DNA from: Guillardia theta CCMP2712 | Lineage: Eukaryota > Protista > Cryptophyta | Direction of reading: 5' to 3' | Length of the DNA: 64,000 nt | Assembly (NCBI RefSeq): GCF_000315625.1 | Contig: NW_005434649.1 | Coordinates: forward strand, 124,001-188,000 | Shown here: piece by piece, positions 1-55,420 of the stretch | Layout: each line of letters opens with the position of its first letter | Position numbering within the stretch: position 1 is the stretch's first letter | The notes under the pieces: model-generated | Told to the model about the DNA's origin: nothing | Databases searched by the model: none | Seen by the model: the letters and a program-made list of their open reading frames with translations, nothing else | Position numbers and translations under genes: made by a program

Positions 1-1297
1 GTAGGTTACACATTCCAAGCCCAACCATGGCTTGTTACCTTGAGTAGAGAAGAATCGATAGAACTCCCACTTGTCGCAAAAGTCCTTGAGCCCCATGTTG
101 GGCGGGGCATGACGACGTGAACGAAGGCAGTGAAGGCATGGTACTGAAAGCCCTTCAAACTCTTTACGGAAAGCATCCTGTCGCCAAATTTTCTATCAAA
201 AAAAAAACATTTTTGCAGTATGTGCATCATAAACCTCCAAAGGCTTACCTGAATTTCCTGTCGGTGACAATTCGATCGACCAGCCCTCCAATAATCTACA
301 ACAACCATCAGCACAAGTTTTCACCAACACACTGAGAATGATCAAATTCGATCGAAAAAATTCTTTTCATTACAATATATCTCATTGAAGAGTACTACAA
401 AGGCAACATGCCAATTTCCGAAATTTTGATTCAATTTCCTGATCCTGACATATTGGTACAAACTACAAAATCTTCTCACCATTAAAATGCACATTTTCGC
501 CTTATCCCCACACACATACAAAGTGCAACCCCTCTCCAGATTCAAGGGAAACCTTTGCTCTCTACAAGCTTCTGCAGGCATCCAGGTCTTGCATCTAGAG
601 CATCCATGTAATCTACCATGTTCTAATGCAAGAGCTGCATGGAGGAGGGCGGAGAAGACTAGCAGAGGCTCGGGCGAAGTTCCCAACTCCGCCCTGTTGC
701 ATTGTGCAAGGGGTACAGAAGGCTAGGATCACGAACGGGTACAGGTATCTTCCGGTCCAAAAGGGGGGTACGGGGGTACTCGGAGGATCTCAAACATTGG
801 TGGTCTACCATCTTCTGCGGATCTCTTTGATTGATCGGGTGGAGGGGTGATATATGATACTCTAAGGGTAGTGAGAGACAAGGGGGGTGGGGTAGTTTGA
901 CGCTTGTCCTTTCCCGCTTGAGGGCGTCATGGAGCGAGGGAAGAAGGCTGGCAGGAGCCGCGGGGAGGTAGAGAGAGGAAGAGACGGTGCAACAGACGCT
1001 GGCGAGTGCGGGCATCCTTCCTGTCCAGATCTTCTGGAGGAGGAGCAGGCCGCGGTCTGCCCTCTGCTTCTGGAAGAAGCTGGGCATGCGCGGGGCAACG
1101 ACGCTGTTGATGTTCATGGAGGGATCCGAGATGATGGGAGGGATAAGGACGTACGGGGAGGAAAAACAACTCAGTCTCGATTTGACTGTAGCTTCTCCTA
1201 TCTTCTGCATTTTGCATCTGTTATTTTTTCAGGCAGCGGGACTCAAACTTCGAATTGTCGATACATTCTCAGCCATCTCAGACTTGCTCTGGATGGG

Positions 1298-4200
1298 ATG
1301 AGCGGCGTTTTGTATTCTTTCGTTCTCAGTCTCGATAGCAGGCGAGCTCAACGGTCATGTGTTCAACCGCTCAGCCTCAACGTGTTCCTCTGCTCCATCG
1401 TGATGTTGAACATTTTCGCTACAACTCTTGCATCTACCAGCTCAATGTTCCCTGATACTAATGTTTCATGTTGCAATCGAGATGTTGTTCTGAATTCGAG
1501 AGCACCTTTGCTCTGGTCATATGTTTCGGAAGGATCTTGGTACTCACATTATTGTGGTTCAATGGATTTGTCTTATGTAATCTCTGGGATCCCTCCGCGC
1601 TACTACGTCACGCAATGGCGAGGTATTTTGATTTGCTCTTTGTCAAGTTCGATTCTGACTCTTGTTTGCCAGCGCGGGTCGGGGGAACGTTTCGTGGCCC
1701 AACTGATCTAGAGCGCAAGGCTAGAATCTTGAGGGCCCAGGATCCCCTATCAGCATCCAGCCTACCTACACTTTTGGGCGAATCAGTCAAATTTGACGGC
1801 TTCGATGATTTTCTCTTGCTGGATCAAGCTGCCTCCTTGGACAACCTGACGTCCAGCATGACTCTAGTGGTTGCCTTTGCTGTCGATGGGGAGTTGACTA
1901 AAAGCTCTTGGATCCTCAGCACAAACGACCTCGAGTCGCCCTACCCTGTCGGACCCAAGGGGTTCGGACTATACCTTGATGAGTTTGGTGCCCTACGGCC
2001 CATGGTTGGCTCTGAAAACCGATACATCTCCAAGTCTAAGATAGGGAGAGGTGTTCACATTGCGACTCTGAGTGCCAGCCCTAGCACCTATCAGATGTGG
2101 GTCAATTCTAGTCTCGAATTCTCCAAGTCAAACGGGGGCCCGCGCTCGATGAACAGCGAGGTCTCGGCAGCAGGAAATGAAATCTTGAACTCCGTAAAGA
2201 CACTGGTCCTGGGGGCGGGAGCGACTGCTGGGCAGATGGATGAATTCTTCTCAGGTTCTCTGATGGAGGTTGTCGTCTACAACGAGGTGTTGAGCGACGT
2301 GGATCGTTATCACGCCGAAAGACTGCTCTGCCTGAGGTGGCAGGATTGCGAGCCAGCTCCCGGATACATAGTGTGGAAGATGAAGAATGACAGTCTGAGG
2401 CCCTACGGCGGGTTTTACAATGTCGAGATGCATCGGACGCAGGGCACGGATGGCAGAGTCGAGGTGCGAGTAGACCTTGCTAACTTACAGAACATGGCTG
2501 AGAACATTGATTTCTCCATCGATCCAAAGGCTCTGCTTGTATCATGGGAACATGGAGACTCATCTCCAAAGTTTCTTCCCATTCTTATCAAGGAAAAAAT
2601 CACTGCTCCGATTTCGAAAAGTATGTCACTGTCAATGACGGTAGTCTGCAGTACCTTTGCCGGGGTCCAGTCTACTACGGACAAGTTTGAACTCACGTTA
2701 GATCCAGGCCCAAACTTGACTTGGACCTCAGCTGCTCCTCTGCAGGGAAACTTTACCGGAGGAGCTGTGATTGAGTTTCACGTCGTGGGGTCAGGATTAC
2801 AACACTTCAATTATTCATGTAGATTTTTGCAGACTTCTACAGACACTCAACTGTACAGCACGTGTATGCAGACCATTCCTGCAGAGCTGGTGTCTTTGAA
2901 TGTAGTGCAATGCGTAGCACCGTATTGGAGGTGTGAAGGCAGTGTGGTCAAGCTCGGGCTGCTGAGAAATGGACAGATAGGCGATGAAAACTGTACTCGG
3001 TCGATCCCAGAGGCACAGGCACCTGTCGAGAGGGTTTTGCGATCGATCATCCCATCTTTCCAAGAATCTCAAGCCGTGTACTACAACTTTGTGTACAGAT
3101 GCAGCGTTCCTCCATGGGTTCCCGTGTATGTTGAGAGCCAGGCCGTGAACAGAAACTTTCTCATCGTCGAGCCTGTCCCTGTCTACGTACAACCAAACAA
3201 CGCTCCTGCGCTGGGGGGTGTCAATATCACCATCATAGGATCTCGTTTCGGCTTGGAGGATTCATCTCCTATCATCGCTGTAGGCGACCAGCCTTGCGCA
3301 ACAACCGAATGGACGTCAGTCAGCAGCATACTTTGTCAACTTCGGCCAGGGGTTGACAGCGACTTGGATGTTAAATGGATGGTTGCGCAAGACGATGACA
3401 ATCTAGTTCGAGTGGCTCGGTCGACACTGTCCGGGTCTTTCTCTTATGATTTACCTCAAATCTCGCAGATCACTCCTTTCCTTCTAGACCAGTCTTCGGG
3501 GAGCGAAGTTGTGACCCTGCTCGGGATCAACTTTGGAGACATTGACAGGAAGCCGACGGTGCGCTTCGAAAAATCTCAATGTGGATCAGTTCAGTGGACT
3601 TCGGACAGCAGCATTACTTGCCAACCGCTCCAGGGGTTTGGCGGAGTCAACCTGATCAATTTGAATTTCAGCAAAACAAATGTCAACCTGACTTGGTCCC
3701 CGGGTTTTGTCATCTTCGGTTTCTTACCATGCGTAGCTGTGCATGGACTGGAGCCCCTCGGAAACTCAAGTTTGCCTCTCCTGAGTGAAGGGAACGAAGA
3801 CATTGCCATCTTCGGTAGCAACTTTCCTGACGTGAACCAGTCGGGAGACTTTTGGCTTCAAATCGGCAACTCAGTTGCAGAGATCACTCAGTACGAATCC
3901 TCTAGCAGCTTGCGCGTCAGGAGCCCAGCCGGGGCCGGTAAAGACCTTCCAGTGATCTTCGTGAACAACGGATTGTGGTCGAGCACGAATGTCACAGTCT
4001 CCTTCAAGGCTCCTAACATCACCTCCGTCAAACCGTCCAATGCTCCTGCTCATGTTGCTGATGCATGGATTACAATATTCGGATCCAACTTCGGCCCGGC
4101 GGAAGAAATCTCTGGACCCTACGGGATGGGAGCTATCAACGATCCTCACCCCAGGAACGAGACTTGTCCGATCCTTATTTCACCAACTGTCACGACCGAG

Positions 4201-7200
4201 AACCTGGGTCAGTCGATCACCATCGGCTCGACCTCTTGCTCGAGCGTCCACCATGTTTCATCCACTTCGTTGATTTGCAGATTGTCGAATGGGACAGGCT
4301 CCAACCTCAAATTGACCCTTGAGCTCAACGGATATCAGGCTGACTATCACACGTTTCAGTATGACTATCCAGAGTTGACTATGATATCGCCAGCGAATGT
4401 CCCTCCTTCCAATGACGTCGTCTCAGTCCTGACTGTCTATGGCAAGAACTTCGGAGTCGAGCCATGCTCGGGAACCTGTTCACTTAATATCTCGATCGAG
4501 ACGAGTTGCGGCGAGACCACTTGGATATCTGATTCATCGTTGCTCTGCAAGGGACCCTTCGTATCTAGTACCAACTCCACCTTCATACAGGGAGTAGGGT
4601 CTCACAGGGTACAAGGAGAGGCCAAGTTCTCTGATGGGGCAGCGGAAGTTGTTTCTAACATCTCCTTTCACTTCGACGCTCCAGTCCTCACCAGCCTTTC
4701 ACCCTACGAGGTACCGTCCACCGGCGTTCAGTTCGTCTCGTTTCTGGGATCAAACTTCGGCCTTGAAGACTTCTCCCCGGTTGCTCGCATTGGATCCTGC
4801 GCCTGCACCTCCACCGAGTTCGTCAGTGACAGCTCGGTCAAGTGCAAGATGCCCCCGTTCTCCTTGTTCATGCACGAGTTCAACAACGCGAGCGTGGAGG
4901 TGGGTGGGGCAGTGAGCAGCAGCACACTGAGGCTCAGGTACCTCTCTAGACCCGTCATCGAGTTTGTGAGGCCCTCCAATTCTCCGAGCACGGGAAAGAA
5001 AGACGTCACAATCTTGGGTTTCAACTTGGGTATCGAAACCGACACTGTCGTAGCCAAGATAGCACAGGCCTCCTGTTTACAGACGGTGTGGCTGTCGACT
5101 ACTTCGCTGGCCTGCTCCACTCCTCCTGGACTAGGAAGAGCAGAATCTGTGGAAGTGATCATTCAGTCCAAGATGGCTACGATCTCTTTGGAGCGAGCAG
5201 GCGCTTTCTCCTACGATTATCCTTACTTAAACTGGACGTCATTGGGCAATGCAGCTCCGAAGGGAGGGCAGGTTGTCCACATTCGTGGTGGAAACTTCGG
5301 TATAGATGGGAGGCGAGGAGGCATCGTAGGTATGATAGACGCGACAAGATGTTTGCAGACAAGCTGGACGTCCGATAGCTCTGTTGACTGTACTCTATCC
5401 CCCGGGATCGGAAACTCAGTGCTATGGTTGAGAGCTTCTTGCGATGACTTCAACGGAGGGACGAGATTCTCCTGCGTTGAAACTCCGCAGGAAGCTCGAG
5501 TTCCGTTGCTGTGGGACAGGCCTGTTTTCTCCGAGTCAACGTACAGCCTCCGGACCGTAGAGCAGGAGTACAACTTCACAGGAAACAACTTCGGGGCCTT
5601 CGACTCAAGCATCTATCTCAAGATAGGAGAGACCAACACTTCGTTCTGCAACTGGTTCTCCGATACCTCCATCTCCTGCACCATACGTGGAGGCCTTGGG
5701 TTGAACAACGCTGAAATCTTCTATGTAGCCCATGATCCCAGCGCTCCGCTCCAATCCTACTCTAACTTGTTCTCTTTCGACAACCCAGTGATCTATAATG
5801 TCTTTCCTGACTTCGGCCCCAACACTGGTGGTCAGACCGTCACCATTAATGGCACCAACTTTTCGCCCTTTGACAATTCTGTGACGATCAAGATCGGCTC
5901 CACCTCATGTAGGTCATCCTCCTGGGTCTCTGATTCTTCTCTCTTCTGCTCGACTCCTGCTGGAGCCTATATACACCGCACGGTCTCCATCGACTTCAAC
6001 GACGGAGTGGCGCGAGCATTTAAGGATCAAGCCTTCAACTACAGTTCCAAGACTTGTGCTGAGATCAAGAAGTACGAGGTCAATGCCAAGGACGGTGACT
6101 ACATGCTCAACTCAAGGCCGACAGTGTGGGACGGGTTTGTAGTCTTCTGCTCCATGATCTACGAGGTGGTTGGCTTGAACAGCTTAGGCTCCATCCGCAC
6201 AGCCCCCACCATCTGGCTTGACGCCTCGTATGAGGCTTACTTCCGCTTCCGCCCCAACGTCTCCGACCTAAACGTCATAGAGTGGAAGTCTAGAGTCGGG
6301 GACGCCATTTTTGAGCCCACCGACGTCAGTTGCCTTCAGCCCCAGCTAGTCAGGAGCGACCAGACGTGGACGAAACGAGCTGGGAACGTCGACGGGACCC
6401 TGCAAGGGTTCGATCTTGTCAACCCTGGCATGGTCGCGTTTGAGGGGATCAACTCTTCCCTTCACAGCCCCATCAACTCCTCGGACTACAGCAGCAGCCT
6501 CACTGTCTTCATCGCCTTCACTCGCCTCGGCTCTGGATTTCTCCTCAGCAACAACCAGAAGAGTCCGCTGTCGGGGTTTGGAGTCTACGTGGAAAAGGAG
6601 GGCAGCATCAGACCTATATTGAGCTCGGAAGTCCGGTACGTTTCGGCGGCTCGGCTACAGGAGAACAAGTTGCACATCGTGAGCCTGGTTGCTGACACGT
6701 CTCAGTCGAAGTTGTGGATCGATTCAGAGCTTAGCCTTGGATATCAGAAGTTCCTCTGCAAGGACAGCCCGTCGGGCATCTTCGTCAAAAATGCGCAGTG
6801 TGTCAGCGCCACCAACTTCTATGCATGCCTGAAGCCAGAGTATCAGCAGCCAGAGCAGTCCCTCCTCTCGGGATCGTCGATGCACTATGACATCACATCC
6901 AACCTCGAACTCAATCAAGACCTTGAAGCTCTTGGGAATTTACAGTTCATCTGGAAGTCTACAGTCGGAACGCACAAGATTGTCGGCGTTGTAGCTAAAG
7001 ACAAGTTTACAGTCGAAGTTCCTGCCCTCACGCTAAATTGCTCTTTCTTCAACCAAGTCGCTGGAAACAGCTTCGCAGACTTCACCATTTTCGCCGTTTT
7101 CCAAACGACCCGCCTTGTGAACGAAGACTTCCCTAGGATCTTGTCCCGCATCCTGTACGGCGGGAATGTTTCGCAGACAGTGGCAACTTGCAGAATCAAC

Positions 7201-10200
7201 GGAGAGAACTGCAGCTCTAGCAACGCCACTGGCACGGTTGTGCTCTCATCGACTATCCAAGGTCAAGTCGCTGATGAATGCAACGGAGACTGTGCGTGTC
7301 TGGTGGCAACAGCATGCGAGGGCTGTGAGATCGAGATATCCGAGTTACTTGTGTGGGACTCCCTCATGGCTCAGCGGGACATCCTGCAGGTTGAAGACTT
7401 TCTGATGGCAAAGTACCTGGTCAACAGTCCCTGCCAGGAGAGCGGAGTTGAGCTTGTTGATGGCTCAAACGGACTTGACTTGGGGACATTTCCTGGTCAC
7501 ATAATCAACGCTGGGTCTGACTCCGGCTTCTTCAAGGGAGACATCGCAGAAGTCTTGATCTTCAACAGCTCCCTGTCGGATGCTGACAGGTTGGACGTCG
7601 AGCGCAGCATGTGCCTGCGTTGGAAGCAGAGCTGTGCTTACGTGACGATCGAAATGTCGATCGCTGGTCTGTATAAGGACTTCCTGGGCCTGAAGACTGC
7701 TCTGCAGCAGCTGGTCACCAACGAGCTTTCCCAGCACTTCAACTTCGATCACGTGATCGTTACAGCATCGCAGTCCAGCGGCAGCCAAACAAGCAGCAGG
7801 AGACTCTTGCAGACTACAGCAACCCAGTACTACATCACCTTCAAGATCATCGGGCTCAGCGACGGGCAGGCGGCCAACATGACCACAGCTCTCGAATCCT
7901 CCTTGTTCTCTAGCATCGCAGAGAGCATCTTGAAGGAACTCAGTTTTGACGTGCAGCTGCTCCCTCCAGTCTCCAGTGGTGGATACATCAGCACTGGCAA
8001 GGCTAACTTCACCCCAGCTGAGGTCAGGACGTATGAAAGCTCGATCTTCAACAACACTTACCAGCCGGAGGTGGTGAGAATCAAAGTGAACCGTGTGGAA
8101 GGGACGGACGGGACGGTTATTCTAGACTACTCGACCGTCAATGGGACTGCCATGGCAGGCCGTGACTATGTTGCTTCTTCAGGAAGTTTGATCTGGGGCC
8201 ATGGTAACAAAGACGAGAAGACGATTGAGGTCACGGTGATCGATAACGAAGTGTTTCAGCCCGGGGCCCGGAACTTCTCATTGAAGTTCCGGGTCACTTA
8301 CTCTCAGTTCGGATCTTTCCAGTTCGTGGGCTCACCCCAGGTGACGGTCGAGCTGAGAGACAACTCGCTCAGCCCCGAGCCCTTCTGGGAGGACGTGGTT
8401 TCTGAAGCTGGCAGCGGGTCGTACCTGGGGCCGGTGGGAGGGAGCTTCGCGATCATCGTCCGGGGGCAGAACTTTCCAAACCGCTCAGACTATCACTGCG
8501 TCGTTTACACCTCGTGCTGGACCTCGTCTGCCAGCATCACCTGGATGGACTATGAGACACGCACGATGATGTGCGGGATCGAGTCCACCGAGCCCGCTGA
8601 GTTCCTCAATTCCAGCAGCGTTCGGTGCATTGTCCCTCCCTGGACTCCCCCGTACAGTGATGAAGAGGAGGTCATGCTGAGGCTTGGGGTGGGATCAAGC
8701 ATCGGGGAGGGGATCGACAGAGTTTCGGGGACGTTCAAGTTCAAGTTCAAGTTCCCGCACGTCCTCGCCATCTTCCCCAACCACTCGCCGACGTTCCCAG
8801 CGGCTGACTACTCGATCACTGTAGCTGGCGACAACTTCGGATACTCCGAGACGCAAGTCTCGTTCTTTATCGGGGAGAGCTCTGTGCTGAACGCGCTCTG
8901 GGTGTCTGACACGAGTGTGAAGGTCAGCGGTTTGCCGAGTGGGTCGGGAAAACTCCTTGACGTGAGGATGGTCATCTGGGATCAGAACGCGACCGCGTCT
9001 TCCCTGTTCTCCTACAACGCGCCTGTTGTCAACAGCACTGTCAGGGATCTTGGGGACTGCAGCGAGCTCAATCTAACAGTCGTGGGTGTCAACTTCGGGA
9101 CCACGGCAGATCTGCCGCGAGACGTCAAGATTGACAACTCCACCTGTTCGCGGCTGTCATGGACGTCAGACTCCCAGATTGAATGCGTCACCGATGTTCA
9201 AGCTCGAGCAACGAGAGCAGATGCTGGGAGAAGGACGAGCATTGCGATGACAGTGGATGGAGTGGTTGGAAACACTGAAGGCATCTTCCAGTTCCGTCAA
9301 GTCCCCAACATCTCAGCCATCTCGCCAGCTAACGGCCCTGTCCTTGACAACCTTCGAAATCTCACAGTCTACGGGAGCAGCTTCGGGAGGCAAGACAACT
9401 TCTCCTACATCTCTGCCCAAGACAAGGTCTGTACAGATCAGCTGTGGATTTCTCTCACGTCCATCACTTGCAACTGTGAATTCACCGGCTTCGAACCGAT
9501 CAACCTCCACATCACTGATCCCCTCTACGGTGACTTCCCCTCATCCGTCGAGGTTGCCTTCGACCCCCCACACGTGACTGCCGTCCCTTACACTGTCCCT
9601 TCGGATCGCAGCAGCAACCTGACCGTCTTGGGCCTCAACTTCGGCAACTACCAGCAACCGCCCTCCTGCTTCTTCCGAGGTTTACCCACTGAAATCTACT
9701 GGCAGAGCGACTCTTCGTTGATGTGTACGGTCCCACCGGAGGACGAAGGGCTGCCGATCCTCTCCTTGAACAACCAGGAGAACTTCTCCTTTTCCTATTC
9801 TCCCGCTTGCGTCACCCGAGTCAACCCCTCCTCCGTCCCTACATTGGGAGGAGGGGTCGTCCTGTACGGGAAGAACTTCGGCATCGTGGACCTGGGCGTA
9901 GAAGTTATGGTAGGAGATAGAGTCTGCACCAACACCGAGTGGACTAGTGACTCCTCCCTTTCCTGCTCGGTCCCAGCTGAGGAGACGAGCTGGAAGTTGC
10001 CGGTGACGGTTGTCAAGAAGAACATCACGGGGGTCTGCAACGACACGTACGTTATCTACAGTAACATGAACCTGACCAGCATCCTGCCCGCCGAGGGCCC
10101 AGCTGAACGCGGGGGAAATGTCACTGTCCTGGGGAGCAACTTTGGGGCCTCGAGCCCCGACAGGGTGACCGTCTCTTTTGTAGACTCTCCTTGTCAACAA

Positions 10201-13200
10201 ACGAAGTGGATCTCCGACTCGAGCGTCCTTTGCGAGGGGGGCCCGGTGATCAGCTGTGACACAGTGTCGGGCTACAGTTGCAACCTTCCTCTCAAGGTCA
10301 ACCTGACCATGTACTCTGCTTCGCGCTCCACCAGCGGCTTCTACGAGTACTCAGTTGGATCGCCCTCCCTGATCGGAATCACGACGGATGAAAACTCCCA
10401 GATCCTGCACGAGGCCTACGACCTCCCGTCTGACGTCGTGCTGCTCAAGGCCAACGGTAAGACTACCATCGCCATGGAGTTTGAGCACTGGTGCCTGTGT
10501 CAGAACGAGACCCTCAGGGTACTGCAGTCGTCTGATTGCTCGCCTTACGATGTTTCCTCGCGACAGGTCACTTGTGTCATTGAGCCGTTGGTAGCAGAAG
10601 CTCAGTATGGCTGCCTCCTGCCTATCAACATGACTTTGACCCAGAACAACCAGACGTTTCCTGCAGGACCGATCAAGTCTGTCTATGTTAAAATCCCTAC
10701 AGTCCTGAACATGACACCTTCCATTCTTCCACGGAAGCTTGATGTCAACGTCACCATCACCGGAAGCTGTTTTGGACTGAATGATCTTTCTCCTACAGTT
10801 TCTCTCGGAGCGACTCAGTTCGTAACTACTTGGGTTTCATCATCGTCTATCATCGCCTCCCTCTCGCCCCAGACAGGTATCCCGAGCAAAGACCGCCTCT
10901 CGCTGGGCTTCAAGGGACTCTCTGCAAGCGAAAGTGTCGATGTTCCCTTTAGTTACTTCTCCCCAACAGTTACCAGCTTGTCAAACTCTCGAGGACCAGT
11001 CACCGGCGGCAGTCTTATCTCGATCTATGGTAACGATTTTGCACCAGAAGATGCGAACTACTCGATCCAAGTGGGCAATGTCTCTTGTGTTCTTGTGAAG
11101 TACGAAAGCCCTTCGATCTTAACGTGTCAGATTCCTCCTATGGCTTCGTACCCTCTGACCAAATTGATGCATTTCACCTACAACGAAGTAGCCATCAGCT
11201 CGACATCAGATCTGTCCTTCGCTTACTTTGAGATCTTGTCACTTCGCTTCTGGAAGACGAGCAGCTATCTCTGCGAAGGCGGTTGCTGGTTGTCAATCTA
11301 TGGCGACAAATTCAACGGAGCTCCGATCGATCTTGTGCGAGTTGGAGACTTGACATGCACGGACATCAACGTCATCTCAGCCAACTCCTTGCGATGCTTG
11401 CTTCCAGCCAACCAGCTCGTCTTGGAGGATATCACGGTCCACTACGTCGATCGGAGTGCTGTGCTGCCAATGTCGTACTCCTCCTTGCCTGACTGGAACA
11501 TCCAGCTGGGGATCTGCTCGACCCCTCTTGCCTGGTTCAGCTCCAAGGACTTCCTGATCGAGGAGCAGGCGGTACTTTCCATGACGAGCCGATGGGTCTC
11601 GAGCACCGGCGAGGCGACGGCACCAAACGCGCTGACCGGAGGCTTCAAGTCGAACCCAACGTGCGGGAACGGCGAGGCTTGTGTGGAGGCTCAGGATGGG
11701 TTCATTTGGGATACCTCAGCGTACCTGGGGAGTTTGACTGGGATGATCGTGTTTGACATTGACGGGATATCAGATGACAACGTGACTGTTGCCATGACAT
11801 TTACCAGCCCTCAAAGTCAAAAAATGGAAATCGCGACCTTGAGGATCTCGGGCAACAACCAGATGGTCTTGTCTGCTGCAGATCTTTCATGGAACTTCAA
11901 TGGCCCTTCCTCCTCATTGCTGCTCAGTTTCAGACTTAGTGGCAGTGCTTGCAAAGTTGGTATCAACACACAGATTCAGTCCTTCCCTTGCCCACCTGGC
12001 TTTCCACCTGTAACTTCCCTTCAGTTCTCAATCATTGAGACGACTTGTACGCAGAACTGCAAGCTGAGACTGTACCAAGTCGCGATGTTTGACGTCCTCG
12101 ATGACTATCAACTCAACAAGGTTGTCAAAGCTTTGTCGCTTCAGCATTCTGCGATCGATGAAAGCTCAGCTCAAGCAGGGAACGTTACGTTTGACACAGA
12201 CTCCCTCAATGTGGTGGCAGGGCAACTATTTCAGGTTGCGGGGAGGAGAAGCGGACAGAGCGACGGCTGGTCGCTCGCCTACATCACGTCAAACTTCGCC
12301 GGGGAGATGGTGGTGGTACAAGAGGGCGAGCAGGTACAACCCTGCAACACAACTCGCCTCGAGATCCTTGTTCCCATGATGGGACCGCAATGTCGCGATC
12401 AGTACATCTGCTGGAACTCCTCTGCCTGCCTTGTCAAGTGGCTATTCTTCCCTTGGGACCCTTCGAACCGCTCTCTCTCTCTCCGCGTCTGCGATGCCGG
12501 GAACGGGACCCTCACGCAGAATCACATCACTATCGAGATCTCTCACCTTGACTCTTCCTATGGAGATCAGCTCGGCCCGAACAGCGCTATCGACATCTTT
12601 GTTGAAGATGTGCTCCTTCATATTATGAAAGAGATCTCCATCGTCGGAAACAACATCCTAGTCTTCGGGCAAGAGTTCCTTCAACACGGATATTACACCA
12701 TCTTCTTCACCTACGACTGCCCTTACAACGAGAGCTCAACCATCGCAATCAACATGACTTGGTCCAACTTCAACACACTCCAACTTCCTCTCGCTGAGCT
12801 AACATCCCGCCTTCCTACCTGTTGCTCTGACCGGGCAAGCGTCGAGGTCAAGTTCTCAGATGCGCAATGGAGCCTTGCGTTGGTTCCTTACAAGCCGAGC
12901 TCGAACCAAGGAGGATGCGATTTCTCTCTGGAGTTCTGGAGCGTGACTTCAGTGACGTCGGCGTCTGCAGGAGGTCAAGGGGACAATCTGACAGTGACAG
13001 GTCATGGGTTCTCCTCCTCCTCGTCTTACAGCTGCCTGTGGTTTACTGATTCCTCCAACCAAGAGACTTCAGCTCGAACGCTGTCGTCGTCTGCCCTCGA
13101 ATGCGGCATCCCTCCCTGGACTCACACACTGGACGTCAACTTGGAAGTTCAGGTGCGAGATGATTGTAATCGAACAAGAAATCTCACGAGGTACACGCGC

Positions 13201-22200: not shown

Positions 22201-25200
22201 TCAAACCTCGACCTTGTGGTGGAAGGTACTCAAAGAGAAGTGAGCATCCCCAAGGATATCTTTACCTTTGACAACCCCTCCATAGAGGCAATACTACCCT
22301 CCTTCGGTCCTACCAGTGGTAACTTTAATGTGACGATTCTCGGAGTGAACTTCGGTACATCTGAGCATTCGATCGCAACAATCACTATCGGGCAAACGCA
22401 CTGCATTGATTCTTCTTGGATCAGCGACACTACTCTCATCGGCGTTGTTCCTCCAGGAAGTGGAGTGGGCAGGAAAGCATACATCACGCGATCCGGCTCA
22501 CAATCAGTGGAAACGATCGAGTTCACATACCTCGCACCTTCTCTGACGAATCTTGTTCCATCGAACGCCCCTCCAAGCGCTTCGAACCAGTTCCTTTCCA
22601 TCTTTGGTGCGAATCTTGGAACCTTAGCTTCCCCGAGGCAGATTGTTGTCGGCGACTCTTCTTGTGCTTCGATAACTTTCAAGTCCGAGTCAAGCTTGAG
22701 TTGCAGACTTGCCCCGGGTACGGGCGCAATGAAGTATGTGGCAGTCTCTGTAGATGATCAGAACGCAAGCTCCCTCTTCCTGTCTTACGATGCTCCTCAC
22801 TTGACCTCGTTGAGCCATGGCAAGGGGCCGGACACAGGAGACTTCTCTTTCTCCGTGTACGGGTCAAATTTCGGCACAGAGGGTCAGGTGCCTCGTCAAG
22901 TCACGATAGGGCCGAGTCAATGTCAATCGATCTCATGGTTCTCTGACTCCTCCATCAGATGCAGAGCTCAGCGAGGAGACGTAGCGGTGTGGTCGGTCAA
23001 CGTGATGGTTGACCAACAGCAGTCGAGCGGAGCACTGAGTGTTGAGTTCTTCAAGACACCAGTGGTAACGTCATTGCAACAGGCCAGTAAGAACATCTCT
23101 GATTGCTCCGAACGATCGGTAACAATCCTCGGCCGCAACTTTGCAACTTCGGTGTCTGATTACGATGTCCGACTCGGCAAATCTTCTTGTTCTTCACTGC
23201 TCTGGCAATCAGAAAGCTCAATCACGTGCACTTCCTCAAAAGGCGTTGGGGTGAGCAACGATCTTTCTTTCAAGTACCTCAACAGCGTCTCCACTCTCTC
23301 GAACGCCTTTACCTACTGTCTGCCTGCCATCACCGACGTCGTCTTGCCTCTGGTGCCAGATGGCCAGTTCACGGTGGTTGGCAGCAACTTCAATGACAGA
23401 ACCTTTCAACTTCGTCTCGGTGACACTCAATGTCAATCGGTCGGCTGGATCTCCAACACCGCGATCACTTGCATCCCAGCGCCGATGGGCACACAGAACA
23501 TCTCGATCAGCATAGACGTTGACGGAGCTCATGTTGCCTCCTCGTTCAGTGTCTCATACCAGCTGCCCTGTATCACCGGTATCTCTCCTCAGATTCCTGT
23601 CCCCACTGCAGGAAGCAAGACATACACAATATCCGGAACTCACTTCTCCTCTAGCCAGCTCGCCAACATCGACGTGAGAGTAGGAAACAGCTTGTGCTCC
23701 TCACTCTCCTTCATATCGCAAACTTCAATCCGCTGCAGGGCGCCAGCAGGGACTGGAATCGACCAGGTTGTGTCTGTCTATGTCGATGGCGACTCTCCTC
23801 CCACTCCCGAGTCTTGCACGCACGTGTCGCTTACCTATGCTTCACCAGTGATAACTACCGCCTACCCGCCTGTGGGATACAGCGATGGGAGTTCGCTAGT
23901 CACTGCTTACGGGAGAAACTTTGGTGTCGGACAGGCTGCAACAGACACGGTACAAATGAAAGTAGGAGACACGCCTTGCTCAACAACGGAGTGGATTTCT
24001 GACAGCGTGATTGTCTGCCAAACACCTCCTGGCGTGCTGTCAGGACTGCCGGTGAAGGTGGAGGTATCTGGACAGCACAACTCCCTCACCACTTCATTCA
24101 CGTATTCGTCACCTTCTTGCAAATGGATCTTCGACTTTGAGCAGACTCAGATGTCCAACTACTACTTCGTCTACTCGAAGGGCAACCTTGGCAGAAGCAA
24201 ATCCATTTGGTGTGACACTTATCAATTTTCCAATGTCTCTCAACATCGACTGGGCCTATACAGTGCTGGGTTGTTGTTCTGGCTCGATGCGAGCAATGTG
24301 TACTTCTTTGAGTTCATGAACGCAGCCATGGAGTCGGTGAAACAGGTTGACTCGTGGAACTCTGCTGTCAACCAAATCAAGTTCCGAGCGGACCAACATG
24401 AGCAGAGCTCTCCCCTCTACGACAAGAGCTCGGGCATGGTTCTCTTCGACGGAATCGACAACGCGCTAGTCTCCAGCGTCACTCGCACAGCTACAGAGTT
24501 TGTCCTCATCGTTGCCTTCATGCCTGACTGGCGCACTCTGTCCACTGGCCTCTGCCCTTCGGGCTCTAGAGGGCGGGGGGACACCAGCATGCCTTGTTCA
24601 GCTGGCTGGGTCTTGAGCGATACCGACCTCAAGGAGCCGACCCGCCCCCGCGGCGTTGGACTATACGTGGATGCAGATAGATACCTGCAGGTGACCATAG
24701 GCAACATCACCGGGTTGTACCTCAAAGAGCCTCTGCTGAGCCATGACGTGAGCGTGCTGACGTTAGAGGTGAGGGGATCGAGCATTCGAGCCTGGCTGAA
24801 CGGAAACCCTGAACCTTCTCTCGACTATGTCAGAGTACCAGGAGACGCTACTGCCCTGGCCGGACAAATCAACCTGACGCTGGGGGCACGGGGAACGCAT
24901 TATGCGTCAGCAGGGGTTGGTGGGCTGTTGGATCAAGACCACTATAGGGGATACATCAGTGAAGTTCTCCTCGTCGAGAGCTTCGTGTCTCAAGAGGAGC
25001 GAAGGCGAGTAGAAAGGTCGGTCATCGCTAGGTGGCAGCCAGCTAGCAACAGCTTCGGCGGCATCATCCAAGTGACTTGCGCGCAAGAGGTGCGGGAGGG
25101 CTCCAACGTCGTCATCACTTTTGCCAGGCTGGTGGGATCCGACGGGCCCGTGCGAGTTGGTTTTGAGATTTCAACCCCAGGGTACACGAACCAGTTTGAA

Positions 25201-28200
25201 GTCTTGAATGTGACAGACGGGTTTGTTGCTTGGGATCATGGAGACAGCAAGGAGAAAACTATAGTGATTCAGACTCTATTCGACCACCTGAAAGATCCAG
25301 TCACCATACACGTCAGCGTCTCGTTGCTGTTCTCCGAGCATCATGCGGACGTCAGTCAGACTTGCGAGAACATCTCGAAGCACAACGACGAGCCGTACAT
25401 CACGAGCATCACTCCAACTCGGGGCCCTGCAAACGGGGGGACTCTCCTCTCCGTCTATGGGAACTTCGATCCGGGGAGTTACCTCAGCGCCTTGAATGCC
25501 TTCGACTTCTCAGTCTCCATTGGATCAGGTCAGTGCGACATTGTTCACTTCTCATCGGACAAGAGCCACCTGGTCTGCCAGCTGCCTGCGGGCTGTGGCT
25601 GGAAGGATGTACAACTTCGGAGGGGCGTTAGGTGGACGTTTGCACTGAACGCGTTCAAGTATGACTTTCCGACCTTGACCTCGTACCCCTCCAACCTCCC
25701 AACCTTGGGAGGGAAGTCGATCACGGTCAGCGGAGAGGGCCTCGGAATTCCAGGAGTGTTGAAGTATGTTTCCATGGCAAACGATCTCGTATCCGACAAC
25801 AACCTCACGGTCACTTTCATTTCTACCTCGAGCGTTTCAATACGGTCCATACCTGGGGTCGGTCAGACAGTTCTGATAGAATTTTATTCATGTCTTGGAG
25901 ATGCATTCCCTTTGCCCCTGTTCTCATACGACAAACCTCAGGTTGTCGACTTGTTGCCTCAGCGCAACAACTTGTATTGGCCATTCTTAACGACAGTGGT
26001 CGGGAAAGGTTTCGGCAATGCCGATTTCTCACCCAGTGTTGTGATTGGAGGTACCAAGTGTCAACCTTCAAGGTGGATTTCAGACAGCTCGATGTCCTGC
26101 TTTGCAAGTTGCACTCAACGTTTGACGTCGGCACAGGTCATCGTCGATGGTCAAACTAGTCTGCCTTCGTTGAAACAGTTTGACTTCAACTCAAAAGTCA
26201 TTGACTTCTCTGTCACTTGGTGCGATGCTAGTTCTTCGGGCCCGTTGCAGGCCGTCTGTTCTGGCGGTTACTCTGTGGCTGGAACTTCTCTCATCCGTGC
26301 TCAACGAAGCTCGTCAACCAACAACGTCAGCGTGTGGTTCGGAGATACTCTATCACCATCAACGACGTGGCTCTCAGATATTTTGTTGCAGGCCCACGTG
26401 CCGAATGGAGTTGGAAGGAACTTGGACGTTCGCGTGTCCAGCTCATCCACCGTATGCACTTCGGTAGGATATTTCTCGTACAAGAGGCCACAGATATTGG
26501 AGCTCCAACAGCAGCCTGGGGATCCGTCACATGACTTCTACATCCTCGGAGAGAACTTCGGGCGGTACGACAGCAATCCAAAGGTGTCAGTAGAGGGAGT
26601 TACTCTCACCAGCCAGTGGGTCTCGGAGACTTCGATCTTGGCTCAATTGATCACGTTCTTTGGGTCTGGAACAGTCACTGTGCAAGTTGGAAACATGTAC
26701 GCCAGCTCACCCTTCAGCTTCTCCAACAAGTTTCCTTATGCTACTGCTATCTGTCCTTACAACGGTTGCGCCTGTAACGGATCGAAGTCGCTGCTTGGTG
26801 GAGACGCGTTTCTGATATGTGGGAACAACTTCGGGTTGAACAACACGAGAATCACTGGTGACATACGAGCCTTCATAGGTAGCAGCGAATGCTGGAAGAC
26901 CGCATGGGTATCCTCTACTTCAGTGGAATGCATCCTTCCGCGCGGGTTTGGCGGATTTCACGATGTGACGGTCAAGTTTGGAAACATAACGACCAGCCTT
27001 CCATCCATCTTCACATATGACGGGCCATCTATCACTCAGGTTCAACCAGCCCATGGACCGACTGTCGGCGATACAATCGTAGAGCTGCTCGGTAGAAACT
27101 TCGGTTACCTGCCATTGGCGGAGATGAATCATAGTCTGAAAGCGGTCATTGGTGAAACCCAAGTAGCTTCACTGCAATGGCTCTCAGACTCATCCCTATC
27201 GGTCAAGCTCTCGCCTGGAGTCGGACGTGGTCACTACGTCACCCTGGACGACGTGCAACAGGTAGGCCTGCAAACAACGACCAGCGCGGTAGAGCTCTTC
27301 TCCTATGACCTCCCGAACGTGTCAGACATCATGTCTTCGAGTGTGCCGACGTATGGAGGATGGAATGTCACCTTGTACGGGCAGAACTTCGGATCATCCT
27401 ACGAGAACTCTCAGTATGCCAGTGTTACACTGGGGGCGTCAAAATGCTCCCCGCTCTTCTGGACTGCTGATACCCACATCGAGTGCACGACTAGCGCGGG
27501 AACCGGCACAGACTTGAACATGACAGTGGTTGTCAACAACAGCGATAACACGTTCGTGGGTGTCTTCTCATACTTCAGCCCTCCTGTCATCCAGGCCTAC
27601 GAGCCTCCTAGAGTCAACCTGGACGGTGAGATCTTGACAGTGATCGGGAAGAACTTCGGATCTGCTGAAAACCCAGTCGAACTTCGGGTTGGTGAACAGA
27701 ATTGCGAGATCCTCTCGAGGACTCCTCGCGAGCTTGTTTGTCGCATCCCCAGCAACGTCAATGGGCCCTGGCAGGTTGAACTGAATGTGCGAGGAGCAAT
27801 CTTCTTGGGTATGCTGGAATCAGCTCAGCCGGTGGTGACTAACGTCATGGCTGAATACCAAGCGGGAGGTAAATTTGTCCATCTCTCTATCTACGGTTAC
27901 AACTTTGGGAATTCAACCTCTTTGATACAAGAAGTCAAAGTCAACTCCAGTCGATGCACGAACCTCGTTTACTTCTCTAACAACGAGATCTCATGCATTC
28001 TCAGTCTGAACAAGCCGATGGCGGACGCAGTCTATGCGGTAGCCTTGAGATCGCCGTACGGCTTCAATGACCCGTATCTATTCCGCATCGGGCAAAGAGT
28101 CTTGTTGTTCACCAGCAAAGACTCCTCGTCTGAGATCTGGATGTTCAACCCAGCGAATGACAGGCTGAGCCTTCTCAAGGCAAACCTCACTGATTCCTTT

Positions 28201-31200
28201 GAGCTCGGTATGGCCGTCTTCTCCCCCATCCATGAAGTAGTGTACGTGTTTCATCCGGACGTGGTGAACGCGCAAATTTCATACACAGAGTTCAATTTGA
28301 GCACATTGCTGGATGAGACAACAATGTTTGCAAGGTCAAAGGAGGTGTCTTTGGAGACTGGTCTTGGCTCAAACGCGTTCAAGGTCACAAACTTGGAATT
28401 TGACAAGACAACAGGAACTATCATGGGCATGCTTGCGGGTATCAACTGCTCAGATGCTCGCGTGATCATCATCGACCCTTCAGCTTTGCAGATCCAAACG
28501 CAGAAGATCGGAAACTTTCAGCTCGCGTCCAACGTGAGAGCTTGGGATGCGATGAACAGACTGTTTTACGCGATGGTGGTGAGGGAGGAGGAGCAGGTGA
28601 TAGCAGTCAAGATTGACTCCTCGACTCGATCGACATGTGAGGAGGTGGGCGGGTTCTGTCAGGTCACGTCACACCAGCAGGTCTTGTGCTACTATGAGCT
28701 TGGGGTGGGGCAGCCGCTGCCTAACAACACTTGCTTTGCGGCAGACCTGCAGATGAAGAGGATGAGCAGCCAACTGTACTTGTTGCATGGAAGCAAGGGA
28801 GAGGAGCTGTGCTTGCACGCTAAAGTGCTTCATGGTCCTGTCCTAGACAACGTACGGGTGATGTCATACTTCAGGGAGATGGACTCTGTTGTTGTCGTGC
28901 AGGAGGACATGTGGAGCAACTCATATGGCAACAAGGCAAACGGAATGACACTCTTCGACCTCGACAGAGTTTCATGGACCAAGTTCTTTGATCTCAGTGC
29001 AGATTCATGCCATGAATTTGCAATCGACGTACAATCTTCAGCATCGATACAGGCAATCAACGCTTCTAAGACACCGCTGGCTTCCTTCCCCTCGGAGAAC
29101 ATAATTCCGGAGTACTTTGCAGCTCTAGAGTCGGCAAATACCATCATCTTCAAGGATGACGATCAACTCCTGCACACTTACACGTGGAGCCAGATTGATG
29201 GAACTCTGAGAAAAGGCGTCACTAGCATGCCCGTTTCGCAGCTTCGGAGCTTGCTTCCCATCGATGACCTGCAGATGATGGTCACTCCACAGGTCTCAGA
29301 CGTCGCTCCGACGTGCATCTCCACGGCAGGGAACGGCAACTTGACCCTCTACGGGAGAAACTTCGGCGTTGAGGACAGCAGGCCTACCATCTACATCGAC
29401 GGCCTCCCTTGCGCGGACTCAGCCTGGGTATCTGAAAGCGAGCTCGTCTGCAAGGGCATACCCCCCAAGATGACCGACGCTGCCATCGGCATCACCGACG
29501 GTCACGTGACCTTCGAGGCGCTGAACCACGTAGCGCACTTCTCCAACATCCTTCGCTATGTTCCTCCTCGAGGGAAGCAGGAGCTCCTGTGCTGCCCCAA
29601 GTGCGACATCCAAGTGACGGTCGTCGCCTGTTACAGCAACAACCCGAAGCTGATCAGCCAGTTCCTTGAACAGATGCAGAGGTGGCAGCAAACATACAGG
29701 GAGGAACCGCTGGATTTATTCAGCGTTCCGTCGGAGAAGTTCAAGTTTGACTTGAAGCAGGGAGAGCCAAACTTGGTCGAGCAAGGTTCGATGCGGATAA
29801 CCCCTGAACTCTACCTGGAGTTCAAGATAGGCAGTTCTAACTGGGGAGAGGCTGAGTTCACTATGAGGATAGAAAACGATTTCTTCTTTGAACCCATTCC
29901 TTTCATCATTCAAATCGACAAGCCCGCGCTAATGGACGCGGTGTTTGAGGACGGGACCAAGAATCTCACTCGTTGCTACGAACCGAACTTCAACCTGACG
30001 ATCTTTGTATCGAACCTTCCTGAGATCTCCAACCATTTCTGCAGCTTTCTTGACATCATCATGCCGATGGGTCCCATCAGTGATCTGACCTTCTCCTTTT
30101 CCCTCCAAGGCGACCGATGCATTGGGCTGGTCGCGGGGCAGTTCCTAGTAGACGGACTCTTCGACCTCGAGGTTCGGGTCTCAAGTAACTTCAGCCTGTC
30201 GAATTCAAGCAGCCAGTGCACTAACGTTCCGACCAACCAGAAGATCCCTCTCCTCTCTGTGCAGTTCACCAAATCTCCTCAGTTCGTCATCGATCTCAGC
30301 CGTCAGTCAGGAGAAGTTGCGCTGCTGAGGGCGGACGGCAGGACAAGAGTGGAGCTCTCGCGAGGGGCCGGGGCCATCATGGTCGACGGTTTTGTCACCA
30401 ACTTCTCCAGCAGCCCCAGCGTGAGGGACTTAAGGCAGTACTTCAACATGACCGAGATCACTTCAAACTCGCTGCAGGGACTCCAAACTCTCCCCACCGT
30501 CTACCCTAATGGATCCCTGCTCCTTTATCCACAGCTCTTGCTTCAACAAAGCACCATCACCTCAAGGTTTCTGCTGCAAATGCTCCAAGAGAGCCAGTCT
30601 TGCGGGTTGTCTACCTCCTCGCAGGAAGTCGACGTGCTCGTGTATTCAGTGAATCAGGCTCCTTCCTTCACTCTCAACAGTCTGATGCTGAATCTTATCT
30701 TCGACATGCAGCAGTGCAATGCCTGCAGCAGAACTCAATTCATCAAGAATGCTAGCGCTGGGGACCAGGAACAATGGCAGCAACTCTCCTTCTTCATCCT
30801 GACCTCAGAGCCGTCATCGATTGTGAATGCCAGCATCGTACAGGAAGAAACCCTCCAACTCTCGATCAATCCTTGCTTCTACGGCGAGATCAGTGTCCTG
30901 ATCTGGGCAGAGGATTCTGGCGGAACGCTCTATGGGGGCACGAACAGGTCTGCCAATCATTATTTCAATATCACGGTGAACAAGTATGACCTGCACTCTA
31001 GCGGCGACGTTCAGTTGCAGTGTCCTTCCGTTGGAGTGGAAACAGCCGATTTCACCAACTACTTTGATCACTGCATGCAGATCTCTCAGGTGCATCCCTC
31101 CATCTCCAGCATCAGCAACATCAGTGACACCAACGGGAAAGTTCGGTACTCAGTGACACAGTACTTCGCATCGCAGGAGAGCATTCTTGTTTCGTTCAGA

Positions 31201-33402
31201 GACTGGATGCTGCAATCTTTCAACTTCACTCTCCTCTTGAACTGCTCTGAGCCGCAGCCCGAGCCCTCCTACCACCTGCTCCTCCCGGACATCGTCGTCA
31301 TGGAGAGCTCTGGCGTGTACAGCCCGACGCTTTTCATCTCCAACATCACATACAGCGGGTCGAAGAACGATGTTTCGTTCGCACTCAGGAATTGTACCGG
31401 TGACGTCAACATCTTTGTACGGCACCCTCAGGTCACATTGAGCTCGTCCCTAGGATACATCACTTTCGAGGTCCAGGAGTACGCCTTTGGAAGGGTGACT
31501 TGCCGGCTCTTGTTCCTTGTACAGGGGATGCGAGTGTCGGGTCAGGACGAGAATGTCACAATTCAGGTCACTCCCTACAACAATCCGCCGTACTTCAATC
31601 TCACCTCGCAGATTCAAGTCAATGAAAATTCATGGTGCGTACAGGTGGTCAGCAATCAAGATTGTTCCCCCGACTATCGCAAGAATTCGTTCTTGCACGT
31701 TCACAGGAATTTTGCATATGATATCTCTGCAGGGGACCCGTACGAATCTGCAATGGACTTGACATTCACGGACATGGGCGTTTCATTTCAGACTTCCGCG
31801 AACGCTCTGTGCGGTATGTATACGTGCTCATATCAGAGATATAGTTTTGTTGTTGAGCACGTGGATAGAAACGAAAGCGCGTTTCTGTTTGCTCAGGGCC
31901 CTCAGATCTACCCGGATGGCTCCCTCGTCTTCGTGCTGAACCAGAACGTGTTTGGCTCCACCAGCTTCAACATTACTCTGAAAGATGACGGCAACAAGTC
32001 ATCTTCAAGAGCCTTTACAGTGGAGGTGATGAACGTCAACCAGAAACCCACCTTCCACCTGCAGGCAACAGAAATTGTAGTGCAACCCTTCGCGTACCCT
32101 CAGTACTTGTCGGGATTCATGCAGGGGCTCTCGGCAGGACCTAACGAGGGATTTCAGAAGGTTTCCTTTGTCCTGACTTTGCTCGATCCTGGTGCTCCGT
32201 TTGCGCTCTTCGGATATCCCAGCTACAACAGCTCCGACCAGTCCCTTGCCTTCTGCACTTTTCATTCTCTTGAGGCGCAGGAGGCAAGGCTGCAAGTCAC
32301 CATGGTCGATGACGGCGGGGACTTCACTCATCCGTTTGCGGGAGGCGTTTTGAGCCCTTCCTCCAACTTCTCCCAACAGCTGATGACGTTCAAGTTTCTG
32401 TCTACATCACCATTCGTGTTTGACAGCTTGACTATGAAACGCCTCGACGCTTCTCCGCCTCTGCGTGCTCGATATGGGCATGCAGCTGCTTTCCACTCGC
32501 ACAGCGTCTGGATCCTGGGAGGATTCCTGGCACAGACTTCGCCTACCAGCACAGATTCCTCCTTCTCATCCGACGTCTGGAGGGTCAACCTGCAGTCTTG
32601 CAGCAGCCCCAACGCTCTGTGCCTGCTGCCTGAGCAAGTCACTGTGAAAGCATCATGGAGCAGCAGGTACAACCATGCAGCCGTCAGTCATCGTGCCGCG
32701 CTCATGGTGCTCGGAGGTCAAGCAGAGGGAGGAAGAAGCTTCAACGACGTGTGGCAAAGTTCCGATGGAGACTTGTGGACACAAGTGACTGCCAGCGCTG
32801 CCTGGTCGAGGAGGTACGGCCTGGGAGCAGCATCCGTGCTAGCATACGACACTGAGGGGAAGAAGGAATACCTCCTGGTCATGGGCGGAGCGAACTTTGT
32901 GGGAGGAGGAGTGCAGTATCACTCGGACGTATGGATCAGTGAGGATGGCTCGAGCTGGAAGGAGCTGCAGGCGCCTTGGCAGGCTCGCGCTCTTCACAGT
33001 GTCGCTGTCACCAACGTGAACTGCAGTCAGAGGATCTGGCTTGCAGGAGGCGAGGGCTCGTCGGGAAGTCTAAACGACGTGTGGATGGCTGCCCTCAACT
33101 CCTTGGGTGAGATGACGTGGACGCAAGTCACCTCGTCCGCCGCATGGAGCAGGCGATCAGGACACGCTCTAGTCGCCTTCAAGGACCACCTGCTCGTCAT
33201 CGGAGGGCGCCTGGAGGACGCGATGATCTCTAGAGAGGTCTGGGTGTCAGCCGACGGGTCAAGCTGGAGCCAGTGGTCACCTCCAGCAGGCTTCGTCAAG
33301 ATCACTCAGTTCGGGGCCGCTGTAAACAACGGGACTCAGTTGCTCATGTTCGGAGGAAGGAGCTTCAACGAGGTTGAGAACTCTTTCTGGGTAATCGAGT
33401 AG
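1298..33402 (+). CDS. Giant secreted multidomain protein (about 10,684 aa): IPT/TIG arrays, LamG/ConA-like, Calx-beta, fibrinogen-N-like, SEA-like, cadherin-like and Kelch-like domains. Exons about 1298-1622 and 1673-33402
   Basis: The ORF track shows 10,644 open codons. Dozens of TIG-type units (GxNFG...C....W.SDSSI.C..P.G.G). Canonical Calx-beta at about 8070-8360 (RVEGTDGTVILDYSTVNGTAMAGRDY). LamG-like modules start with WLDAS-type motifs. C-terminal AWSxRxxH Kelch-like blades. A GT..CTGAC..CAG intron at 1623-1672 joins an upstream exon with a hydrophobic signal in frame. The start codon is inferred. Confidence 0.9.
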
Positions 33403-37125: not shown

Positions 37126-37173
<48 letters not shown>

Positions 37174-37181
37174 AGAGAGAA

Positions 37182-37216
<35 letters not shown>

Positions 37217-37500
37217 AAGAGAAATAGAGACTGAGAGACATAGAGACAGAGAAAGAGACAGAGAGACAGAGAGAGAGAGACACTGAGAAAGAGAAAGAGA
37301 GAGACAGAAAGAAAGACAGAGAGAAAGAGAGACAGCGAGACAGACAGAGAAAGAGACAGACAGAGAGAAATAGAGAAAGGGAAAGAGAAGAGACAAGAGA
37401 GAAAGATACCGAGAAAGAGAAAAGATAGGGAAAGAGACAGAGAGACGGGACAGAGAAAGGGGCTGAGAGACAGATAGTGACAGAGAGACAGAGAGTCAAC
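35165..37500. repeat. About 2.3-kb polypurine satellite (GAGACA/GAGAAA/GAGA units) with internal higher-order duplications
   Basis: The + strand is overwhelmingly G/A. A block of about 170 bp at 35935 recurs at 36758, and a block of about 105 bp at about 36260 recurs at about 36972. Confidence 0.95.
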
Positions 37501-48180: not shown

Positions 48181-48313
48181 GAACCTAAAAAGGGCTCTTG
48201 TCAACCTCTCTCGCTTTCCCACGCCGAATGCCGTGGCACAGTGCCCAGCTGAGGCGCACACAAGTTCCTCTTGAGTTGGTGTGAGCCTTTCATCTGATGA
48301 GAAGCAGCCTTAC

Positions 48314-54803: not shown

Positions 54804-55420
54804 NNNNNNNNNNNNNNNNNNNNNNNNNNNNNNNNNNNNNNNNNNNNNNNNNNNNNNNNNNNNNNNNNNNNNNNNNNNNNNNNNNNNNNNNNNNNNNNNN
54901 NNNNNNNNNNNNNNNNNNNNNNNNNNNNNNNNNNNNNNNNNNNNNNNNNNNNNNNNNNNNNNNNNNNNNNNNNNNNNNNNNNNNNNNNNNNNNNNNNNNN
55001 NNNNNNNNNNNNNNNNNNNNNNNNNNNNNNNNNNNNNNNNNNNNNNNNNNNNNNNNNNNNNNNNNNNNNNNNNNNNNNNNNNNNNNNNNNNNNNNNNNNN
55101 NNNNNNNNNNNNNNNNNNNNNNNNNNNNNNNNNNNNNNNNNNNNNNNNNNNNNNNNNNNNNNNNNNNNNNNNNNNNNNNNNNNNNNNNNNNNNNNNNNNN
55201 NNNNNNNNNNNNNNNNNNNNNNNNNNNNNNNNNNNNNNNNNNNNNNNNNNNNNNNNNNNNNNNNNNNNNNNNNNNNNNNNNNNNNNNNNNNNNNNNNNNN
55301 NNNNNNNNNNNNNNNNNNNNNNNNNNNNNNNNNNNNNNNNNNNNNNNNNNNNNNNNNNNNNNNNNNNNNNNNNNNNNNNNNNNNNNNNNNNNNNNNNNNN
55401 NNNNNNNNNNNNNNNNNNNN
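54804..55420. other. Assembly gap (617 N)
   Basis: Run of N flanked by G/A-rich low-complexity sequence. Confidence 1.

Follow-up and report, generated by a model that had tools for sequence, protein, structure and literature searches.

Does a stop-free reading frame of 10,646 codons (positions 1462-33402, plus strand) in the cryptophyte Guillardia theta CCMP2712 encode a single protein, and what might such a protein do? The frame lies in a 64,000-nt stretch of contig NW_005434649.1 (positions 124,001 to 188,000, forward strand), referred to here as the window and used for numbering unless stated otherwise. Sequence comparison points to a real, conserved gene for a disulphide-rich chain, N-glycosylated as predicted from its sequons. 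The role favoured here, tentatively and with slightly less than even confidence, is that of a secreted, glycosylated, beaded filament serving as a structural thread of the cryptophyte outer coat.

Reading frame and domain anatomy

The chance of a stop-free frame of this length was ~10^-192, computed from base composition, and the GC content of the codon positions followed the coding-type order GC3 > GC1 > GC2 in 11 of 11 bins along it. After removal of a 50-nt intron the protein measured 10,684 amino acids (aa) from ATG 1298 or 10,807 aa (1.17 MDa) from ATG 929, the two candidate starts, in agreement with the single protein of about 10,700 aa proposed in a first-pass annotation. The intron was placed because the metagenomic homologues L023 and L027 have an intron matching it in both phase and codon, and because in the paralogue described below and in homologue L026, which have no intron, the frame is contiguous across the start of the first LamG domain. 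The motif starting LamG 1 was found at 1508, in the exon upstream of the intron and in a frame that differs from the giant one; it had been annotated at 1511, and the other five annotated LamG starts (6211, 11530, 15655, 19759 and 24277) were exact. Database searches used single-exon references, while the joined translation served for numbering, local alignments and hidden Markov model (HMM) work against fetched sequences. The genome searched comprised 87.1 Mb in 669 contigs.

The hydrophobic stretch near the N-terminus is predicted to be either a signal peptide or an uncleaved signal anchor. Textbook signal peptides were present at the equivalent place in L026 and L027, which is consistent with the export proposed earlier. 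By hydropathy scan, no further segment of transmembrane (TM) grade, glycosylphosphatidylinositol (GPI)-type tail or internal signal-like stretch was found along the giant protein. N-glycosylation sequons, already described as dense, numbered 165 against 98 ± 8 in shuffled sequences (1.7-fold enrichment).

The layout consisted of six LamG/ConA plus Calx-beta-like units, each followed by an array of 9-11 IPT/TIG domains (Table 1), so that the periodic architecture of the first-pass annotation was borne out, with a unit-to-unit spacing of 1,368-1,773 aa. IPT/TIG (PF01833) matched above the Pfam cut-off in many copies, with E down to 2e-92 per segment. An HMM made from the gene's own repeats gave 61 TIG domains, and one divergent domain was assigned by eye. 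Five of the six LamG plus Calx units scored 21-84 bits between themselves. Unit 3 had no score against its siblings and 16 bits against unit 3 of the paralogue, at the same place in the colinear alignment; by these comparisons it is degenerate and recognisable through the paralogue alone. The proposed super-repeat held at the level of architecture and not at that of TIG register: same-position similarity across arrays averaged 3.0 against 0.1-0.4 (sd 19). A titin-style in-register super-repeat was rejected on this slight gain, the one exception being the TIG that opens each array, after Calx.

Pfam scores for the LamG/ConA-like clan (PF13385) were 14.5-17.6 bits, below the cut-off of 27.6. An AlphaFold model of paralogue unit 1 (pLDDT 66) had the ConA/LamG fold (Z ~19, root-mean-square deviation 2.8, ~195 residues aligned), and its structural neighbours were sialidase lectin domains, CBM40, pentraxins and a cyanophage tailspike. 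On this modelling the LamG units are ConA-like beta-sandwiches. Botulinum and tetanus HcN domains were also among the fold matches, at 8-10% identity and among many ConA-fold proteins; toxin kinship was rejected, the likeness being one of common fold only. LamG 2 (6202-7623) holds an insert of ~280 aa, a Cys-rich segment that divides the domain at 6700-7500; its paralogue counterpart resembles a second, degenerate LamG nested in the first. Calx-beta (PF03160) was matched in unit 2 with E 4.9e-14, the sole unit above the Pfam cut-off, and the unit profile matched NCX1/CALX Calx-beta chains and many Calx-beta repeat proteins. By sequence, unit 2 and the profile can be assigned to Calx-beta with confidence. 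Fibrinogen-like starts had been proposed ahead of three LamG domains: that at 15442 was supported (E 6e-5), that at 6040 was weak (E 0.05), and that at 24110 had no Pfam match. Profile positions 30-69 alone were matched, and not the full Fibrinogen-C/COLFI domain of ~230 aa.

The C-terminal 1,800 aa, on which the first-pass annotation was silent, comprised a probable propeller, a lone TIG, an Ig tail of ~930 aa and a Kelch propeller that runs up to the stop codon. The probable propeller was conserved in three family members; its Atlas matches were weak, and Pfam gave no match to it. The Ig tail matched Big_9 (E 0.0014) and a tandem-95 protein (E 5.5e-4). Five Kelch blades were picked by pattern; the last of them closes the chain, with no TM or GPI-type tail behind it, and closes the paralogue too. 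A homologue search with the C-terminus returned only unrelated Kelch and tandem-95 proteins.

Table 1. Features of the giant gene in window coordinates; domain boundaries are predictions.
Feature	Position	Strand	Basis or remark
5' coding exon	929-1622	+	Open reading frame (ORF) 929-1711; hydrophilic leader, signal-like stretch and first strand of LamG 1
Signal-like stretch	1376-1432	+	Sole strongly hydrophobic 19-mer, KD 1.95 (hydropathy scan)
Intron, 50 nt, GT-AG, phase 1	1623-1672	+	Inferred from homologues
Giant exon, 31.7 kb, open to TAG	1673-33402	+	Colinear with 10,988-aa paralogue
Unit 1: LamG/ConA-fold (to 2340), Calx-beta-like (2356-2700)	1502-2700	+	Alignment; model of paralogue unit; profile match to NCX1/CALX
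TIG array 1, 11 domains, first divergent (by eye)	2704-6069	+	Pfam, own HMM
Unit 2: fibrinogen/COLFI-like start, LamG 6202-7623, SEA-like insert, Calx-beta 7978-8364	6040-8364	+	
SEA-like (ferredoxin-like) domain 1, RRLL at 7798	7633-7962	+	RRLL in beta2-beta3 loop
TIG array 2, 10 domains	8380-11508	+	Own HMM
Unit 3: degenerate LamG, Calx-like	11521-12609	+	Colinear paralogue alignment
TIG array 3, 9 domains	12910-15444	+	Own HMM
Unit 4: COLFI-like start, LamG 15646-16389, Calx-like 16414-16761	15442-16761	+	
TIG array 4, 10 domains, split by SEA-like domain 2	16747-19728	+	Own HMM
SEA-like domain 2, RRLL at 17422	17305-17559	+	Motif kept in Hanusia and P0001
Unit 5: LamG with insert, Calx-like	19750-21150	+	298 bits vs paralogue unit 5
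TIG array 5, 11 domains	21124-24129	+	Own HMM
Unit 6: short Cys motif, LamG 24268-25035, Calx-like 25054-25392	24112-25392	+	170 bits vs paralogue unit 6
TIG array 6, 10 domains	25363-28038	+	Pfam, own HMM
~390-aa domain, probably beta-propeller	28081-29262	+	Blade-like sequence pattern
Single TIG domain	29260-29586	+	Pfam, own HMM
Ig tail, at least 3 cadherin-like/bacterial tandem-95-type repeats (paralogue at least 6)	29596-32388	+	
C-terminal Kelch beta-propeller	32449-33399	+	Pfam Kelch E 4.6e-25

Gene family and relation to described proteins

A second copy was found on the same contig (contig positions 483276-450313, minus strand; L007-L010). It is intronless, encodes 10,988 aa and is colinear end to end with the window gene at 32% identity, its arrays holding 11, 11, 10, 10, 11 and 10 TIG domains. 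The G. theta genome contained exactly two family copies, to which the LamG plus Calx unit was confined. An orthologue of the window gene occurs in Hanusia phi, in two pieces (3,057 and 3,951 aa) that show 72-77% identity; because the Hanusia proteins begin immediately downstream of the intron position, they are read as genomic predictions and probably do not represent transcripts. At least four more members (P0001/L023/L024, P0037, P0103 and P0168/L027), 28-44% identical, were recovered from metagenomes or sequencing runs, and their complete TIG arrays also held 9-11 domains.

The unit tree grouped units 1, 5 and 6 each across genes, and therefore the repeats are older than the gene split. Under random partition of 61 domains, all six arrays would fall at 9-11 with p ~2e-5. 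Ancient block duplication accounts for how this regularity arose, and only its retention argues for a constraint on length. There were no DNA-level repeats inside the giant gene and the internal protein repeats were 24-34% identical, on which grounds recent tandem duplication and mis-assembly were rejected. By sequence, family members appear to differ in inserted binding domains. P0001 has an F5/8 type C (discoidin)-like domain at 5440-5600, interrupting the TIG that opens array 4 (E 0.003), and the P0037 locus carries an SRCR plus TIG segment. L026 (positions 1-750; Logan contig, SRR15274666) lacks the conserved intron and is either cDNA or an intronless gene; a literature search on that run yielded no relevant paper.

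Two inserts missing from the first-pass annotation carry RRLL motifs and are candidate SEA-like domains. A model of the P0001 copy had ferredoxin-like topology, with RRLL within a disordered beta2-beta3 loop. The best structural neighbours of the model include SEA-type domains of CELSR1, dystroglycan, PCDH15 and Gpr126; its Atlas neighbours were algal and plant proteins, and Foldseek gave no match at E 0.001. No Pfam or PDB sequence match to SEA was obtained. The first RRLL site was kept in Hanusia, P0001 and P0037 and read RRML in L027, and the second was kept in Hanusia and P0001; shuffling gave an expectation of 0.02-0.15 RRLL per protein. RRLL-like motifs also occurred just after the signal peptide in several homologues. 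A propeller-like region of L024 (10434-11774) held two extra RRLL motifs, which are missing in both G. theta copies. In MUC1, Notch2 and GPR126 the beta2-beta3 loop is the cut site, and the fragments remain joined until pulled (PMC6954182). The case for cleavage at RRLL is one of positional conservation, the cutting itself being predicted. Nothing relevant on RRLL processing in algae was found in the literature searched, and 28 subtilase matches were found in the genome.

Among described proteins, PKHD1L1, which builds the stereocilia coat (PMC6707252), and fibrocystin are likewise large extracellular chains on tandem IPT/TIG domains. PKHD1L1 has 4,249 aa, 13 IPT domains, G8 and PbH1 domains and one TM helix, whereas the algal protein has ~62 TIG domains, periodic LamG plus Calx beads and no C-terminal TM; no segment of it matched G8 or PbH1 in Pfam. 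ADGRV1/VLGR1, of the stereocilia links, shares a very large ectodomain with Calx-beta, LamG/pentraxin and propeller-type repeats (PMC13729602). Its 35 Calx-beta domains, with one LamG, form a backbone ending in GAIN and seven-transmembrane (7TM) domains, whereas the algal backbone is TIG, with Calx-beta once per bead and mostly degenerate, and GAIN and 7TM are absent. The Sema, PSI and GAP domains of plexins were not matched by Pfam. The SEA-domain proteins MUC1, Notch2, GPR126 and dystroglycan have an extracellular ferredoxin-like domain of the type predicted for the algal chain, which has a candidate cut site in the beta2-beta3 loop (PMC6954182). The algal motif, however, is RRLL, as opposed to GSVVV or R-x-K-R; Pfam found no SEA domain, and the position is mid-chain, not membrane-adjacent. 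Bacterial LamG-jellyroll, Calx-beta and tandem-95 surface proteins resemble the LamG and Calx units and the Ig tail in sequence; unlike them, the algal gene has a conserved spliceosomal intron. Of the best 150 profile matches (1.84 billion proteins searched), most were Calx-beta or LamG repeat proteins, those with names being bacterial, and the LamG-Calx-TIG pattern was confined to family members. A metagenome scan for the pattern gave no match.

Each of the domains is known already, and it is the family architecture that is undescribed: as the first-pass annotation supposed, no described match was found in the literature searched, most subscription journals lying outside it. The G. theta genome held 1,350 IPT/TIG candidates, with stop-free frames of 8,500-16,500 aa; these other giant proteins share the TIG type but have no LamG plus Calx unit (C67, 16,482 aa; C2, 11,314; C40, 10,500; C56, 8,821; C134, 8,567). 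Since G. theta has many giant TIG frames, size alone is no surprise. What is surprising is the combination of periodic beads, conserved spacing, a missing C-terminal anchor and SEA/RRLL sites.

Possible roles of the chain

If the chain is a coat filament, it would be imported into the endoplasmic reticulum and glycosylated. The TIG arrays would act as semi-rigid spacers of ~40-50 nm each; with 3.5-4.5 nm allowed for each Ig domain, the whole chain would extend ~320-380 nm. The beads would bind glycans or partner proteins about every 50 nm, forming regularly spaced cross-links that build the chain into the surface periplast coat or its fibrils. With less certainty, a secretory-pathway protease may cut RRLL in both SEA-like loops, giving pieces of ~230, 350 and 580 kDa that, like the parts of animal SEA proteins, would be kept together by the SEA sheets until force or shedding separates them. 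In the literature searched, the cryptophyte outer protein coat was represented by microscopy with no sequence assigned. The family would offer a specific candidate, with beads ~50 nm apart, a length of 0.3-0.4 micrometre and fragments of the sizes given. It would also mean that unicellular algae assemble matrix-scale chains from the parts of animal stereocilia coats and links, arranged in an order for which no description was found.

Several observations weigh against the filament reading. Sharing the ConA fold does not itself demonstrate sugar binding, and the lectin role of the LamG units is putative. The acidic Ca2+-site signature was kept in Calx unit 2 only (one of six), with a trace in unit 3, and was better preserved in the paralogue and P0001; the earlier idea of a Ca2+-stiffened chain, or of any general stiffening through Calx-beta, was thus left unsupported for the window gene. 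The SEA-like Z was only 6.8-8.2, a range that common folds reach, and RRLL was absent from the paralogue. No match to SKI-1/S1P or a kexin P-domain was found in the genome, searched exon by exon, a procedure that intron-rich genes can escape. Long hydrophilic in-frame leaders preceded the signal-like stretch in both G. theta copies and are compatible with membrane anchoring. Lastly, 15 reads, none longer than 60 nt, mapped to the 5' 5.9 kb in one RNA run, six of them at 95% identity or more and none across the junction, and two other runs gave 0 reads; read mapping covered the 5' 6 kb, the worst-covered part of a 32-kb mRNA in a poly(A) library. Run X1 gave unspliced, gappy reads and looks like low-coverage DNA.

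A bolder version casts the protein as founder of a family, so far undescribed, of molecular rulers in the megadalton range, in which the fixed 9-11-domain spacing sets a lattice period of ~45-55 nm in the self-assembling surface coat or the scales and RRLL processing yields force-releasable pieces. This was judged unlikely as a whole. The ruler idea gains some ground because the arrays keep 9-11 TIG domains in genes ~30% identical and, if true, it would give the first sequence for the long-described surface periplast protein.

One rival is a type II membrane protein, an adhesin or sensor with an uncleaved N-terminal stretch, a short cytoplasmic leader and a stalk holding the Kelch propeller ~0.3 micrometre out, the outer part of which SEA cleavage would shed. 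In-frame leaders measured ~150 aa in the window gene (from ATG 929), ~120 aa in the paralogue, which has no Met just ahead of the hydrophobic stretch, and ~130 aa in L026. Basic residues immediately precede the stretch, and a binding-type propeller at the far C-terminus fits such an orientation. However, L027 has an in-frame stop followed by a plain Met-signal peptide, a Met stands directly ahead of the textbook signal in L026, the paralogue stretch falls below KD 1.5, and the leaders are not conserved. The type II arrangement was considered rather improbable.

Cryptophyte flagella bear hairs and scales. A part in these structures, or in the furrow/gullet lining, would parallel the place of the closest animal proteins by domain type, the stereocilia coat and link proteins PKHD1L1 (PMC6707252) and ADGRV1 (PMC13729602); the likeness is by domain type alone, and both animal proteins are membrane-anchored and have no periodic layout. 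This assignment is quite doubtful. Little likelihood was likewise given to a multivalent lectin net for bacterial capture (mixotrophy), cell-cell recognition or virus decoy. Six lectin-fold domains and one or two propellers along a long chain would suit such a net, as would the discoidin-like domain of one homologue and the SRCR plus TIG segment at the locus of another. Recognition genes, however, usually expand and diversify, whereas here there are two copies with fixed array lengths, and against Hanusia the LamG units are conserved about as well as the spacers or better, except unit 3. It is very improbable that the frame fails to represent a single protein, whether through faulty assembly, as a silent relic or because it gives rise to several transcripts: no spliced or spanning reads were found in the three RNA runs (5' 6 kb) and no full-length database entry was found for the locus, but there are no mis-assembly-prone internal DNA repeats, contigs assembled independently in 2011 match the 5' 6 kb, the paralogue and orthologues are colinear, and no internal signal-like stretch occurs.

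Other features of the window

A convergent minus-strand gene (33491-34272) ends less than 100 nt past the stop of the giant gene and contains a 9-bp repeat array (33795-34060). At 35174-37495 there is a purine-rich 8-bp tandem array of 2.3 kb (~303 copies); the three long minus-strand ORFs there were classed as non-genes because the array explains them. An ORF of glycosyltransferase family 61 (E 4e-11) lies at 48281-50131; within it, at 48541-48871, are 9.2 copies of a 36-bp tandem repeat with 98% match. An MCM helicase subunit with MCM_N, OB and P-loop domains was identified at 50914-52131. An assembly gap of 617 N (54804-55420) lies between GAG/AGG microsatellites, and the ORFs crossing it are artefacts.

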